Of a stretch of 47,019 nucleotides of DNA, positions 3,426-41,278 are shown piece after piece; within the stretch, counting starts at the first letter, position 1, and each line of letters begins with the position of its first letter. Under the pieces are notes generated by a model. The model was not told where the DNA came from. It searched no databases and saw nothing but the letters and a program-made list of their open reading frames with translations. Both the position numbers and the translations under genes were made by a program. The DNA comes from Octopus bimaculoides (Eukaryota). Location of the stretch: positions 109,127,894 through 109,174,912 of the forward strand of contig NC_068986.1 in assembly GCF_001194135.2 (NCBI RefSeq). Reading direction: 5' to 3'.

Positions 3426-4056
3426 ACTATATTTATTTAATATAGGCTTTAACATAGATTTTTATCTTCAATTCATTAATAAATTAATCATCTCCAACAG
3501 CTTATGTCAGAAAACAGACAAAAAAACAACAAACATAAACAAGAAATAAATATCTGTGGAGAGTTGATACATAGGTATGGCCTCAACCAAGGGCCCTCAA
3601 CTTTTCCCTTGTGACTTTCGTGGAAACATTCTCAAGCTTACAGTAGTCTAGTAGTAATCAATGACGAGTAAAAATGTAATTAAACAATGCTAATTAGAAA
3701 TACAAACATAAACCCATAGGTCATGCTAAATAGCTATTAGTGAAACTAGCAAAATATCTGGTGGATTGTCACTGCCGAATCTTTTTTCCCATAGCTATAA
3801 ATGGCATATAATTGTCTGTGCTAATGATTATCTGACACTGAAATACATCTAATATCCTCAAATATTTAATATTCCCATGATTACAATTATAATTAAGAGA
3901 GCTCTTGATTCACTGTGTAAACGGCAGAACATTACCAAGAATATTGTTGTTGCTATCAACTTCTCTTAAGTTTTCCCATCGAAATGGGGGATTTTTAATT
4001 TCAGTTTGGGGAAGAGCTAAGCCATGGGAACATATTTGCTATGACATAGCTGAACT

Positions 4057-4278: not shown

Positions 4279-4320
<42 letters not shown>

Positions 4321-4420
4321 NNNNNNNNNNNNNNNNNNNNNNNNNNNNNNNNNNNNNNNNNNNNNNNNNNNNNNNNNNNNNNNNNNNNNNNNNNNNNNNN
4401 NNNNNNNNNNNNNNNNNNNN
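4321..4420. other. Assembly gap (100 N) inside a (TAA)n run
   Basis: N run. Confidence 1.
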
Positions 4421-4534
4421 ATAATAATAATAATAATGAAAATGACCTATGTTCATTTCGATGCAATATCTAGAATGATTAATACATATTATAAAATATT
4501 ATAAAATAGGGGATACTCCATCTCCTCGGGGTCC

Positions 4535-4566
<32 letters not shown>

Positions 4567-4842
4567 GTAATATGCTGCCAATAAAAACAGAAAACATTCA
4601 AATCCAATTTTCATAGTTGACCCATACCTATATATATATACATATAGGTATGTATATACATACATACCTATATATATATATACATACATACATACACACA
4701 CATATATATATACATATCGACCTATATATATATATATGTATACATACATACACACACACACATATATATATATATACATACATACATACCTACATATATA
4801 TATACTTATAATCAAAATAAGCAACAAGGATATTGAAACGTA

Positions 4843-11405: not shown

Positions 11406-12846
11406 AAAATGGCAAAAAATCATATATTAATTAATATCGATTAATTACCAGGAAGCTAGCACATTTAAAGAATCAAAGAGATTCAGAAACAGTATCTGCA
11501 ATCTCCGGGGATTAAAGTACATTTTTATATATGACGTTGACCACTAACGTGGACATTTAATGTGCTAGAAATAGATCACATCTTGTGTCTAAAAAGACCT
11601 AAATTGTTCTCAACATGAAATATAGTGTGATACCAAAACGTAAGTGGGCAAGACATTTAAAATCACCGAAAAGGAACATTATTAAACAGGTACCGGTTTC
11701 AAATTCAACAATCTTACCGACTGTATTTCTCTTCAGCCTGATAATCATCAGAACCCCATACAAAGTTGCCCACCGCCATAAGTGCGTGTGTATATGGTTC
11801 TGCTAATTACAGTTTAATGGTAAAATTCAAGTCTTCATTTTGGCGTGCTAATTCCAGGAATATGTCTGCAGAGAATATTAACTGCGTCGCATATATCCAG
11901 TATGAGAACTCTCATACCACCTCATACCATGCTTGGAATACTTTTTATCACAGGTCTGCTGGATCAGAGCAGACCTAGGGCTAAACAACAATAGCAACTA
12001 ACAGCAAAATCATACATGTGTTGATACTTCTGTCACCCAACATGCTAAAAATAACAGTTACATTTTTCATCTATACCTACATTTTGTCATGAAATTAATC
12101 CATAGAAATTTTGAAAAACAAACATCATTTTAATTAACATGCAATATATTTGAATATAATACAAATGAAACATATAAATGGGACAGTCATGGGTGGAGCA
12201 CCTTTGATCACAGGTCTACTGCATCAGAACTGACACTGGACATGTCCGCATGTGTCTGTATACACATTTGTGCCTGCTGGCCCTACTTACACACTTATAC
12301 AAATCCACGCATGCACCAAGGAACCCTGCCTATTATTTCCTAGTTTGAAAATCTATTCCAAAGTTGAAAACAGTTTTTAGTATTAGGGTATTTTCACTGC
12401 TATTTTGTTCACTGTTCCATATAACACCGATAGGGTTATATAAACAGCATCCAGGCTGAGTTGAAGGGTTTTCAGGAATATTATTACCCTAATACTTTAT
12501 CTGGGAATTATTTTTATTGGTAACACTACAAGCGAAAGGCAAAGTCATACGTGATGTAAAGTGAGATAGCTTGCTCTTATCTAAATACTGTAACTTAATT
12601 TTGTTTGGCAACCAGTTTTGTTACACCAAATTGATATACACATCTATTCATTCATTCAATCAGTCCTTTTATGTTTGTTTTGCCAAGCTATGAATAGACA
12701 TTGGGGTTTAGTTTTACAGCCAGATACCCTTCTTGTTGTTAACCCTTAGCCGTTTTTCAAGTAATGAATATTTTTTTATTCTACGCATTTTTAAAAGTGC
12801 ACAACTACAAGGGTATTTTCTTAGTAGGGAATGTCAACACATTGTA

Positions 12847-31721: not shown

Positions 31722-32230
31722 TCATCATCATCATCATCGTTTAGCATCCGTTTTCCATGCTGGCATGAGTTGGATGGTTTGACTGAGAACTGGCAAGCCA
31801 GGAGCCTGTACCAGGCTCCAATCTGATTTGGCAAGGTTTCTACAGCGGAATGTCCTTCTTAACACCAACTGCTCTGAGAGTGTAGTGGATGCTTTTTCAT
31901 GCCACCGGCACAAGAGCCAGTCAGGTGGGCCTGGCATCAATCACATTTGGATAGTGCTTTTTACGTGCCACCGGCACAGGGGCCAGTCAGTGGGTACTGG
32001 CATCAGCCACATTCAGTTGGTGCTTTTTACATGTCACTGGCACGAGAGCCAGTCAGGGGATACTGGCATCGGCCATGTTCAGATGGTGCTTTTTTGTGCC
32101 ACTGGTACGGAAGCCAGTCAGGCAGACCTAGCAATGACTGCATTCGGATGGTGCTTTTTACGTGCCACTGGCACAGGAGCCAGTCAGGGAGCACTGGCCA
32201 TGGCTACAAAATTGGCTTTACTTGACTCAA
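31722..32230 (-). mobile_element. Family A copy with five ~66-bp tandem subunits
   Basis: Units beginning (G)TGCTTTTT near 31890, 31953, 32020, 32086 and 32151. Confidence 0.8.
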
Positions 32231-37419: not shown

Positions 37420-37910
37420 GAGTACCCTTTAATCATTGGGCAATAAAATGCGCTTGTGATGACCTGTTGAGGCAAGTGAAATCGTTGTTATGGCTGATGA
37501 CAGTAGCGCTTGATTGGCACCTGTGCCGGTGGCACATAAAAAGCACCATTCGAGCATGGCTGATGCCAGTGCTGGCTGACTGGTCCCATGCCGGTGGCAC
37601 GTAAAAAGCACCATTTGAACGTGGTTGTTACCAGTGCCGCCTGACTGGCTCCTGTGCCAGTGGCACGTAAAAAGCACCATTCGAGCATGATCGATGCCAG
37701 TACCACCTGACTGGCCCTCGTGCCGGTGGCATGTAAAAAGCACCACTACATTCTGCTGAGTGGTTGGCTTAAGAAAGGGCATTCAGCTGTAGAAACTTTG
37801 CCAAATCAGATCAGAGTCTGGTACAGCCTCCTGGCTTGCCAGCCCTCAGTCAAACCATCCAATCCATGCCAGCATGGAAATCAGATGTTAAACGACGATG
37901 ATGATGATGA
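37420..37910 (+). mobile_element. Family A copy with ~4 tandem subunits
   Basis: GGCAC(A/G)TAAAAAGCACCATT units, then tail ...AAACGACGATGATGATG. Confidence 0.8.
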
Positions 37911-39019: not shown

Positions 39020-39570
39020 CGTACCATCGTCAACATCTGCTGGAGTGACTACATCACCAATGCTGGGGTCCTCAAGTGAGCAAGGGTCACCAGCCTGGAA
39101 GCCATTTTACTTGGGGGACAACTACGTTGGGCAAGATGTGTTGACAGAACGAAAGACGACCACCGACCCAAGATCATTATGTATGGTGAGCTCACCACTG
39201 GCCACCGCAACAGGGGGGGAACCAAAGAAGCTTTACAAGGACTGCCTGAAGCAGTGCCTTAGCATTTGTGACACTGATTATCGTGAGTGGTCCACTCTAA
39301 CAGCTGACCGTGCTGCTTGGCGCCATAGCAACAGCGATACCATCTCCTCGTTTGAGATCTCTCGCAGTGCCGCTCTTGAAGACAAACTTCAGAGGCAAAA
39401 AAATAATGAAGCTGCATCATCAGACCCTGGACAATCATAACTCTGTCATCATTGCAATCAGATATGTTGATCCCGTCATCAGCCTTATCAGCCACGAACA
39501 AGCATACAGATTACATGGACGACAGCCTTCCTAATCTTTGTCAACGAAGCCAAACCAAGAAGAAAGAAGA
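39020..39570 (+). mobile_element. RTE/BovB-like LINE 3' end
   Basis: HCLRTIVNICWSDYITN...QLRW...PKIIMYGELTTGHR...PKKLYKDCLKQCL...DRAAWR...CHHCNQIC..SLISH; (AAG)-rich tail. Confidence 0.9.
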
Positions 39571-39589: not shown

Positions 39590-39940
39590 TATGGAAGCTT
39601 GTTATGCATTAAAGTTGGGGGTTTGATTGAGCAAAAAGTCTATAGACACTAATGAAATGCTTCAGAATGCTTATGGATTACCTTTCTCACCAGCCCAAGA
39701 GGTTCAAAGGTGGTAGAGAGAAGGGGAGAGATGATGAGAAGTGTAGGAGGAAGGTGGGTATCAGAACTTCAGAGCTGGTTGCGAAAATTCACAATTTTCC
39801 AAATGAAGACAATCAAGTGTTTATAAAAATGATAAGCATACAGTTTGGAGTACGTGCAACAACTGAACACAGAATTATTCATGAAGATCTGAACATGCAC
39901 AAAATTTGTGCAAAGTTCGACCCTGGGGTGCTCAGCACAT
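39590..39940 (+). mobile_element. Mariner transposase N-terminal relic
   Basis: EMLQNAYG...KRFKGGREKGRDDEKC...HRIIHEDLNMHKICAKFDPGVLS. Confidence 0.85.
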
Positions 39941-40074
39941 ACAAAACACACACAAACACACACACACATAAATCCATTGCTTTATATTGAATGAATTAGA
40001 AAGGAGTGCTCAATACATACAGGGTATATGACTTTTTTATTGAAACAGAGTTTATCTCACAACTAATTCCATGC

Positions 40075-40233
40075 TACATTATTTACATTATTTACATTAT
40101 TTACATTTGACAGATATTTGTCCTCATCTTGTTTGTTGTTAACACAATGTTTCAGCTGATATACCCTCCAGCCTTCATCAGGTGTCTTGGGGAAATTTCG
40201 AACCTGGGTTCTCATTCTTAAGGTATTTTTCAA

Positions 40234-40270
<37 letters not shown>

Positions 40271-40295
40271 TTCAGGTCACTGCCTGGAATCAAAC
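40075..40295 (-). mobile_element. Inverted, 5'-truncated copy of the family E element
   Basis: Reverse complement of 40352-40540, about 95% identical by eye outside the (TAA)n. Confidence 0.9.
40141..40186 (-). ncRNA. Type I hammerhead fold, stem III mutated (ACGU to ACAU)
   Basis: GACAC-CUGAUGA-A-GGCUG-GAGGGUAUAU-CAGCU-GAAA-CA-UU^-GUGUU. Confidence 0.65.
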
Positions 40296-40299
40296 GCAC

Positions 40300-40564
40300 G
40301 GGCATATGGCATAGTGGTTAAGAGCACAGGCTACTAACCCCAAGATTCCGAGTTCAATTCCAGGCAGTGACCTGAATAATAATAATAATAACATCGAAAA
40401 ATACCTCAGGAATGAGAACCCAGGTTGGAAATTTCCCCAAGACACCTGATGAAGGCTGGAGGGTACATCAGCTGAAACGTTGTGTTAACAACAAACAAGA
40501 TGAGGACAAATATTGTCAAATGTAAATAATGTAAATAATTCCTCAGGTCTAAAATATAGAACTA
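40300..40564 (+). mobile_element. Family E: tRNA-headed SINE-like element carrying a hammerhead ribozyme
   Basis: A box TGGCATAGTGG (40307-17), B box GAGTTCAATTCC (40350-61), anticodon-like loop CT-ACT-AA, (AAT)n spacer, hammerhead, (TGTAAATAA)n tail. Confidence 0.85.
40441..40486 (+). ncRNA. Minimal type I hammerhead ribozyme (Penelope-type)
   Basis: GACAC-CUGAUGA-A-GGCUG-GAGGGUACAU-CAGCU-GAAA-CG-UU^-GUGUU; stems I and II pair, stem III is the ACGU palindrome. Confidence 0.8.
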
Positions 40565-41278
40565 TAGTTGAGATCTTCAGGTAAAGAAAGCAGTGGTGTG
40601 AAACTCGAGTCCCAAGAAGACAAACACCTAATTTCAGTTTGCATACATGCAAGCATATATGTATGTAGGTGTACGTACATGTATGTATGTATGTACGTAT
40701 GTTTAAAGAAAACCGTTGTTCTAGGTCCAGGTTTCGAGATCAAATCCAAAAGCATTGCAAAATAACCTACCTACAACAAGGTGAACTCTTTCTAAATCTA
40801 CCTGTATATCTGTCTACCTTTCATACTGTCTACCTTATTCTTTTGCACACACATACTTATCCTCTATCTCACTTTTACACACACGCCCACACACACACCC
40901 ACACCCACACAATCACACCCACACACAGTTTTTATATTACTACTTCACTCATTGTAAATACACATGTATCCGAGTATGTATGCACGTATGTATATACGCA
41001 TGCAGGCACGTATGTACGCACATCTGTAGATATGTAATGTATTTATAAATACATTTGCTGTACATTTTCGAAGGCTGATTTTGTTAAGTGGAGAAGCATA
41101 AATGTAAACCAATGTAGCTTGGTGGTGCAGCTGTTTCGCACTAAAACCTGAGTTGTTAAACTGTTTTACAAGTCAGTGACTCTTTGTGATCAATGGATCT
41201 TCCTTAGCCTTTGCTACAATCGTTGCAGGTTTTTTCTTTTTTTTTTTTTGTCATTTTGCACACACATACTTATCCTCA

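Follow-up and report, generated by a model that had tools for sequence, protein, structure and literature searches.

Introduction

The minimal type I hammerhead ribozymes of Penelope-like elements (PLEs) show a helix I that is 4-5 bp long, a single nucleotide left unpaired between A9 and position 10.1, a long helix II, and a helix III that carries no loop and is palindromic at 15.2-16.2 (ACGU). They lie near the 3' end of the element and form pairs on opposite strands (PMC4209133; Lunse, Weinberg & Breaker 2017), with the paired motifs 100-700 bp apart (PMC4209133). Here we describe an element of Octopus bimaculoides whose hammerhead is alike in all these respects. It occupies positions 40300-40539 of a 47,019-nt stretch of DNA (NCBI RefSeq assembly GCF_001194135.2, contig NC_068986.1, positions 109,127,894 to 109,174,912, forward strand), called the window below, and it has an inverted sister copy next to it. 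Unlike in PLEs, the hammerhead stands behind a tRNA-type head for RNA polymerase III (Pol III) and not behind an open reading frame (ORF) for reverse transcriptase (RT) and endonuclease (EN); the 10.1-11.1 pair is G.U, and the element ends in a tail of 9-mer repeats. With a probability of about 0.55, we read it as a composite short interspersed nuclear element (SINE) with a Pol III head and a PLE-type 3' module, which would be mobilized by PLE machinery.

A tRNA-type head, a body, a 3' hairpin and short tandem terminal repeats are also found in those SINEs that depend on long interspersed nuclear elements (LINEs) with stringent 3' tails, as in UnaSINE1/UnaL2. These differ from the octopus element in having no hammerhead, and head-to-head double copies are not their usual product. 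Sm-alpha and Sj-alpha of schistosomes are short, non-coding and apparently Pol III-transcribed retroposons in which a type I hammerhead is found (Ferbeyre et al. 1998; Laha et al. 2000; summarized in PMC6765202). However, the Sm-alpha ribozyme, a full hammerhead, has loop-loop tertiary contacts and cleaves fast as monomer or tandem, and Sm-alpha is often in tandem arrays, whereas the octopus motif is of the minimal PLE type without helix III and its copies are inverted. The non-LTR retrozymes (LTR, long terminal repeat) of metazoans are likewise non-autonomous, carry a type I hammerhead, and have been argued to originate from the pseudo-long terminal repeats (pLTRs) of PLEs and to use PLE machinery (PMC7761336; bioRxiv 10.64898/2026.07.22.740005). 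They are tandem, are processed to circular RNAs and have no Pol III head, whereas the copies in the window are inverted, with no tandem copy present, and the Pol III promoter is 5' of the ribozyme. Finally, non-autonomous PLE derivatives such as MRC1 and others of Chlamydomonas (PMC8557442) and the Heliconius Penelope elements (PMC6685494) are short and non-coding, with PLE 3' ends and PLE-type complex insertions, but none has been described with a tRNA-type Pol III head.

In the literature that we searched, an incomplete search with Repbase outside it, we met neither a tRNA-headed SINE whose 3' end is of PLE type nor a hammerhead-bearing SINE in cephalopods. The giant squid genome paper gives only a count of 235 Hammerhead_1 hits, and literature searches with sequence strings from the element and from another SINE of the window returned no paper.

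Architecture of the element

The full-length copy (plus strand, 40300-40539) consists of head, spacer, 3' module and tail. Its start is 7 nt 5' of the A box, which is tRNA position +1, and its end is set where the likeness to the sister copy and the tail repeat both stop. The A box (TGGCATAGTGG, 40307-40317) is an exact match to TRGCNNAGTGG and the B box (GAGTTCAATTCC, 40350-40361) to GTTCRANNCC, both on the plus strand; the 43 nt from the start of the first to the start of the second are the spacing of a tRNA. Downstream there are an (AAT)5.7 spacer (40375-40391, plus strand), the hammerhead, and a small 5-bp hairpin read from the sequence (GACAA-ATA-TTGTC, 40505-40517, plus strand), which is directly 5' of the plus-strand tail, (AATGTAAAT)2.3 at 40519-40539 (Tandem Repeats Finder: period 9, 100% matches). 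The initial annotation, made from the sequence alone, had located both boxes just so and an (AAT)n spacer after them. Its other limit has to be moved: it had taken the element to 40564 and credited it with no tail, whereas the observed end is at 40539, and a 9-nt repeat tail, (AATGTAAAT)n, is present with a hairpin before it.

Exact A boxes occur three times in the window (0.40 expected) and exact B boxes four times (1.53 expected). Only here do the two stand on one strand at tRNA spacing, a coincidence whose joint chance we estimate at about 2e-4 per window. This figure bears on an improbable alternative, in which there is no SINE at all: the locus would derive from a PLE, either as a short non-autonomous element or as two paired PLE 3' ends with 5' truncations, and its A and B boxes would be fortuitous, with transcription by read-through or by RNA polymerase II. 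Such an account gains from the behavior of the head, which neither Rfam nor ARAGORN recognizes as a tRNA. The Rfam tRNA models give no match on the whole window or on a 96-nt slice, at gathering score or at E<=10, and ARAGORN finds no cloverleaf by default or when relaxed to -ps60, with a CpG-restored B box included. Hence the head resembles a Pol III promoter module and is no recognizable tRNA. Short non-autonomous Penelope elements are known as well (PMC6685494; MRC1, PMC8557442), and the metagenome relatives of the hammerhead, described below, have no tRNA-type head 5' of them. It is not only the exactness, shared strand and spacing of the boxes that tell against this alternative: the full-length copy begins where a Pol III start would be expected, and direct reading of the element's sense strand shows no T4 run (terminator).

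The hammerhead motif

A minimal type I hammerhead of 46 nt is matched by descriptor at 40441-40486 on the plus strand, within the 3' module. In helix I, GACAC (40441-45) pairs with GUGUU (40482-86). The core CUGAUGA (40446-52) is followed by an unpaired extra A (A40453) between A9 and 10.1, and helix II joins GGCUG(G) (40454-59) to (U)CAGCU (40468-73) in 6 bp, two G.U pairs included. Then come GAA (40474-76), the palindromic and loopless helix III ACGU (40477-80), and U17 at 40481. The conserved hammerhead core (C3-U-G-A-N-G-A9, G12-A-A14, A15.1/U16.1, and an H17 other than G) is thus complete, with A40477/U40480 and U40481 at the last positions. From hammerhead numbering, cleavage is predicted between U17 and G1.1 (40481/40482, plus strand). 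A complete minimal type I hammerhead with a cut after 40481 had been called in the initial annotation, and every feature that it listed is found where it had been put.

The strict descriptor takes its traits from published minimal hammerheads: helix I with 4 bp or more, CUGANGA, 0-1 extra nucleotide, helix II with 4 bp or more, GAAA, helix III as a palindrome of 4-8 nt, and any H17 but G. It matches 40441-40486, and over 1500 dinucleotide-preserving shuffles of the window it yields one match in total. Leaving helix III free gives a relaxed descriptor that also picks up the hammerhead of the sister copy, with five matches over 1500 shuffles. The rarity of such matches, together with the existence of covarying relatives, some of them linked to PLEs, makes it highly improbable that the motif is a chance resemblance. 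What speaks for chance is the silence of the Rfam hammerhead models, which match neither the whole window nor an 81-nt slice, at gathering score or at E<=10; Hammerhead_1, the covariance model proposed as a check in the initial annotation, is among those that find nothing even at E<=10. This blank is expected, because motifs of this class have no helix III and are missed by standard models.

A second match to the strict descriptor lies on the minus strand at 11687-11740, and reads CAGG-CUGAAGA-G-AAAU...AUUU-GAAA-CCGGU-A-CCUG. Its helix III is a 6-nt palindrome (ACCGGU) and its helix II is long and in two parts (AAAU/AUUU and ACAGUC/GAUUGU). The sequence is unrelated to the SINE at 40300, and no A or B boxes are present 5' of it; it is probably another orphan minimal hammerhead of PLE type.

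The same design at PLE 3' ends

PLE loci were sought independently of the ribozyme, with a GIY-YIG endonuclease query sequence. This query retrieves 1309 PLE endonuclease proteins, the closest named one being from the termite Zootermopsis nevadensis. Five PLE loci were examined (L008, L009, L010, L011 and L012). A minimal hammerhead lies 3' of the endonuclease ORF in L008, L009 and L010, at 60-90 nt past the stop codon in the first two, while L011 and L012 contain close variants that begin CUGAUGA-A-GGC. The motif of L008 (AACC-CUGAGGA-C-GAGGAC...GUCUUC-GAAA-CGU-U-GGUU) follows the window's design, with an extra nucleotide after A9, a 6-bp helix II, an ACGU helix III and U17; the same design recurs in L009, L011 and L012. 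The hammerheads of the PLE loci end about 70-80 nt before the PLE 3' end, and the cut site predicted in the window is 58 nt from the 3' end of the element.

Relatives were also found in metagenome contigs, which were scanned with a looser pattern (CCTGATGAAGGCTG-N6-14-CAGCTGAAAC) that leaves helix I outside. Seven contigs match, and six of them are DNA of animal hosts with hammerheads that have the same core and helix II. Helix III of these six (ACAUGU or AC-AA-GU) is different, as are their loops and the sequence of helix I, which nonetheless still pairs; in helix I alone, three pairs show compensatory changes among the metagenome relatives. A joint alignment, padded by hand, then brought together both motifs of the window, three from metagenome contigs and two linked to PLEs. 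In it, 89.6% of cells pair (65% when shuffled), with compensatory changes in 8 of the 11 pairs. Its covariation score of 0.723 compares with 0.243 for shuffled alignments; none of 500 shuffles reaches it and slid controls stay at or below 0.15, although all these figures are somewhat inflated by the fitting of the alignment by hand to the hammerhead model. With this reservation on the alignment, helices I and II covary across relatives; a covariation check on stem I and stem II had been suggested in the initial annotation. Judged by sequence and pairing, the window motif is clearly a member of the PLE minimal hammerhead class of PMC4209133, from which it departs only in the G.U at 10.1-11.1.

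Three of the metagenome contigs (L001, L004 and L006, from JGI) have one short element in common, which surrounds a minimal hammerhead whose core and helix II are those of the window. From the hammerhead, the element reaches about 35-45 nt in the upstream direction and about 110 nt downstream. In L001, the portion upstream, with the 5' strand of helix I in it, has been multiplied into a tandem array of about 42 bp.

An inverted pair of copies

The full-length copy is one arm of a 465-bp near-perfect palindrome (40075-40539), whose inverted-repeat arms are 92-100% complementary. The other arm is a 5'-truncated sister copy on the minus strand (40075-40295) that runs from the B box to the tail. 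Its tail, (AATGTAAAT)3.7 at 40075-40107 on the minus strand (Tandem Repeats Finder: period 9, 100% matches), reads TACATTATT on the plus strand. Its hammerhead (40141-40186, minus strand, C3 at 40181), matched by the relaxed descriptor, has a helix III decayed from ACGU to ACAU and a C>U change in loop 2, and its (AAT)11.7 spacer lies at 40236-40270, also on the minus strand. A 4-nt junction, GCAC (40296-40299), separates the truncated 5' end of this copy from the first position of the full-length one. The heads thus point inward and the tails outward, and the two hammerheads are 265 bp apart. The copies are 95.7% identical over 188 aligned nucleotides, with eight substitutions, of which seven are transitions and about four are of CpG type; their B boxes, TTCAA and TTTGA, are both products of CpG decay of TTCGA. 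A possible target-site duplication, TAATTCC, is found at 40064-40070 on the left, and this 7-mer recurs on the right at 40536-40542, where it overlaps the tail repeat, so that the duplication is uncertain.

The junctions between B box, (AAT)n spacer and hammerhead are common to both copies, and the composite must therefore have moved as one transposable unit. This bears out the view of the initial annotation, in which a head of Pol III type, a spacer and a minimal hammerhead of the Penelope class belong to a single element. A near-perfect palindrome in a draft scaffold with 2485 N could also have arisen at the DNA level, by a fold-back duplication, as a foldback or miniature inverted-repeat (MITE) type of DNA transposon, or as an assembly artefact. 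We regard this as very unlikely. Each arm stops precisely where the element's tail does, short of the flanking DNA, and the repeat numbers differ between the arms in both the tail (3.7 and 2.3) and the spacer, which argues for two retro-copies and not for a fold-back duplication. The 4.3% divergence, made up mostly of transitions and CpG decay, further indicates that the pair is real and aged, and no artefact of assembly. Nested insertion of the plus-strand copy into an older full-length minus-strand copy was considered too, and rejected: the head segment that the minus-strand copy lacks does not turn up past 40539.

A head-to-head pair made of a full-length and a 5'-truncated copy is a signature of PLE insertion (PMC8557442). 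Among the five PLE loci examined here, three have head-to-head inverted pairs with 3' ends outward and a hammerhead in each arm: L008 (left arm 3712-3992, right arm 4292-4569), L009 (2800-3388 and 4372-5034) and L011 (936-1207 and 2177-2458). The pair in the window has their topology, with a 5'-truncated inverted copy at the 5' end of the longer one. In L008, helix III of the minus-arm hammerhead has changed from ACGU to ACAU, the same CpG decay as in the minus-strand copy of the window, and the palindrome that would serve for dimerization therefore contains an intrinsically fragile CpG.

Another SINE family, with at least eight copies in the window, contains the motif ...CAGCTGGATGCCCTTCCTAACGCCAACCAC... 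and an (ATG)n tail. Two of its copies form an inverted pair (229-400 and 414-585) with arms that are 91% complementary and 13 nt apart. In our own reading, based on the (ATG)n repeat at 385-410, this pair is tail to tail. The head-to-head form is therefore not simply the way in which SINEs pair in this genome.

PLE or LINE machinery?

The features above can be joined in one model. The element would be a composite non-autonomous retroposon, in which a Pol III head with A and B boxes is connected by an (AAT)n linker to a 3' module of about 150 nt, laid out like a PLE 3' untranslated region (UTR) with its minimal hammerhead about 55 nt from the 3' end. Pol III would transcribe a master copy from the position corresponding to 40300 onward, and a PLE RT/GIY-YIG enzyme, acting in trans, would recognize the 3' module. 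Once the target is cut, each of its two DNA ends would prime reverse transcription on an RNA copy of its own, and the outcome would be a full-length and a 5'-truncated copy, head to head and with tails outward. A wider form of this model is tentative, and we give it somewhat short of an even chance: it would have a whole family of Pol III-driven, tRNA-headed SINEs using the RT/GIY-YIG machinery of PLEs and not that of LINEs, with the PLE-type 3' UTR, hammerhead included, as the recognition module.

The foremost competitor is a tRNA SINE dependent on a LINE. Here a stringent-type LINE (L2/CR1-like) would recognize the last 50 nt or so, made up of hairpin and (AATGTAAAT)n tail; the hammerhead would be no more than a domain of the body, picked up from a PLE fragment, and an unusual double insertion would account for the inverted pair. 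The order of head, body and tail is the classic SINE layout. A 9-nt tandem tail with a hairpin before it is typical of LINE-dependent SINEs, and the 3' ends of the eel UnaL2/UnaSINE1 type consist of a stem-loop plus short terminal repeats. In the window, the 5-bp hairpin immediately precedes the tail and the copy number of the 9-mer varies between the two copies, while none of the five PLE 3' ends examined has a repeat tail or a hairpin before it. We still find a LINE partner rather unlikely. Target-primed reverse transcription (TPRT) of non-LTR elements has not been seen to give head-to-head pairs in which both copies bear a tail (PMC8557442), and twin priming, which inverts a non-overlapping 5' segment, gives no second copy with its own tail. 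There is no similar LINE tail in the window, and, measured from the 3' end, the hammerhead stands where PLE 3' UTRs have theirs. The initial annotation had preferred PLE to LINE machinery. The hammerhead class and the head-to-head topology sustain that preference, while the LINE-like tail and hairpin keep a LINE partner in contention.

The composite SINE with a PLE partner has other points to answer besides the tail and the unrecognized tRNA. All of the evidence in the window comes from one locus, whose two copies are adjacent, and the 47 kb hold no further copy. No PLE coding sequence is present in the window according to motif scans for GIY-YIG and RT and to a hidden Markov model (HMM) of the PLE endonuclease. 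The 10.1-11.1 pair, G40454.U40473, departs from a highly conserved G-C, and the same G.U is found in the PLE-linked motif of L009. Exact scans with element-specific 20-24-mers gave no match in metagenome, viral or prokaryote-genome collections, and the six-frame translations of the element, which are spurious ORFs, have no relatives in the protein collection. Together with the hand-fitting of the covariation alignment and the folding energies given below, these observations weigh against our interpretation.

The 3' module had also been considered as a remnant of the C-terminus of a PLE endonuclease ('IEKYLRNENPGWKFP'). This was rejected, as an HMM built from 120 PLE endonuclease matches is silent throughout the window and no GIY-YIG or RT motif occurs.

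Would the ribozyme cleave?

Predicted energies do not favor the active fold. As a monomer, the hammerhead-like fold is at -10.1 kcal/mol and the minimum free energy (MFE) fold, which partly sequesters the hammerhead core, is at -12.7 kcal/mol; as a dimer, the double hammerhead is at -17.1 kcal/mol and the MFE fold at -28.4 kcal/mol. We take these values as uninformative and not as refuting the motif, because minimal hammerheads of this class show weak activity in vitro (PMC4209133). Since the motif has no helix III of its own, the monomer is expected to be inactive, with a cut after U40481 only when two copies pair, and the ribozyme is probably inert as a monomer. 'Self-cleaving' is the weakest part of the earlier interpretation: the monomer is without helix III and the energies do not favor an active dimer. 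It is more likely that the hammerhead is a passenger or part of a recognition module than a processing device; alternatively, it might be active only as a dimer. Both views follow from its position, since cleavage would split the promoter head from the last 58 nt.

Other features of the window

The window is a draft scaffold, with its 2485 N spread over several gaps, and it is very rich in microsatellites (129 rows in Tandem Repeats Finder). A 66-bp tandem repeat makes up two arrays, at 31890-32198 (4.7 units) and 37490-37745 (3.9 units), which lie in opposite orientation about 5 kb apart and appear to be built from the 3' part of the (ATG)n-tailed SINE family. Ten ORFs of the window were compared with the protein collection and none is present there. 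The ORFs at 39045-39440 and 39652-39990 had been guessed to be LINE or mariner remnants; they have no Pfam match and the guess was dropped. Rfam matches by E-value to mir-297, mir-3149 and similar families (40 bits at best, for a gathering score of 90) are false positives on a (TATG/TACG)n microsatellite palindrome at 40640-40707.

Implications

SINEs are defined by their dependence on LINEs. A partnership between a SINE and PLEs, if true, is not described in the literature searched, and with a tRNA-promoter SINE riding on PLEs, Pol III retroposons would have partners of a third class. This would also bear on the role of the PLE hammerhead. Cleavage in this element would uncouple the promoter from the 3' end, which argues for a structural or recognition role, or else for strictly dimer-only activity. 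Such a SINE would offer a short, abundant reporter substrate for the two-ended integration of PLEs, which is poorly understood, and it would help to explain the thousands of 'orphan' minimal hammerheads across animal genomes.

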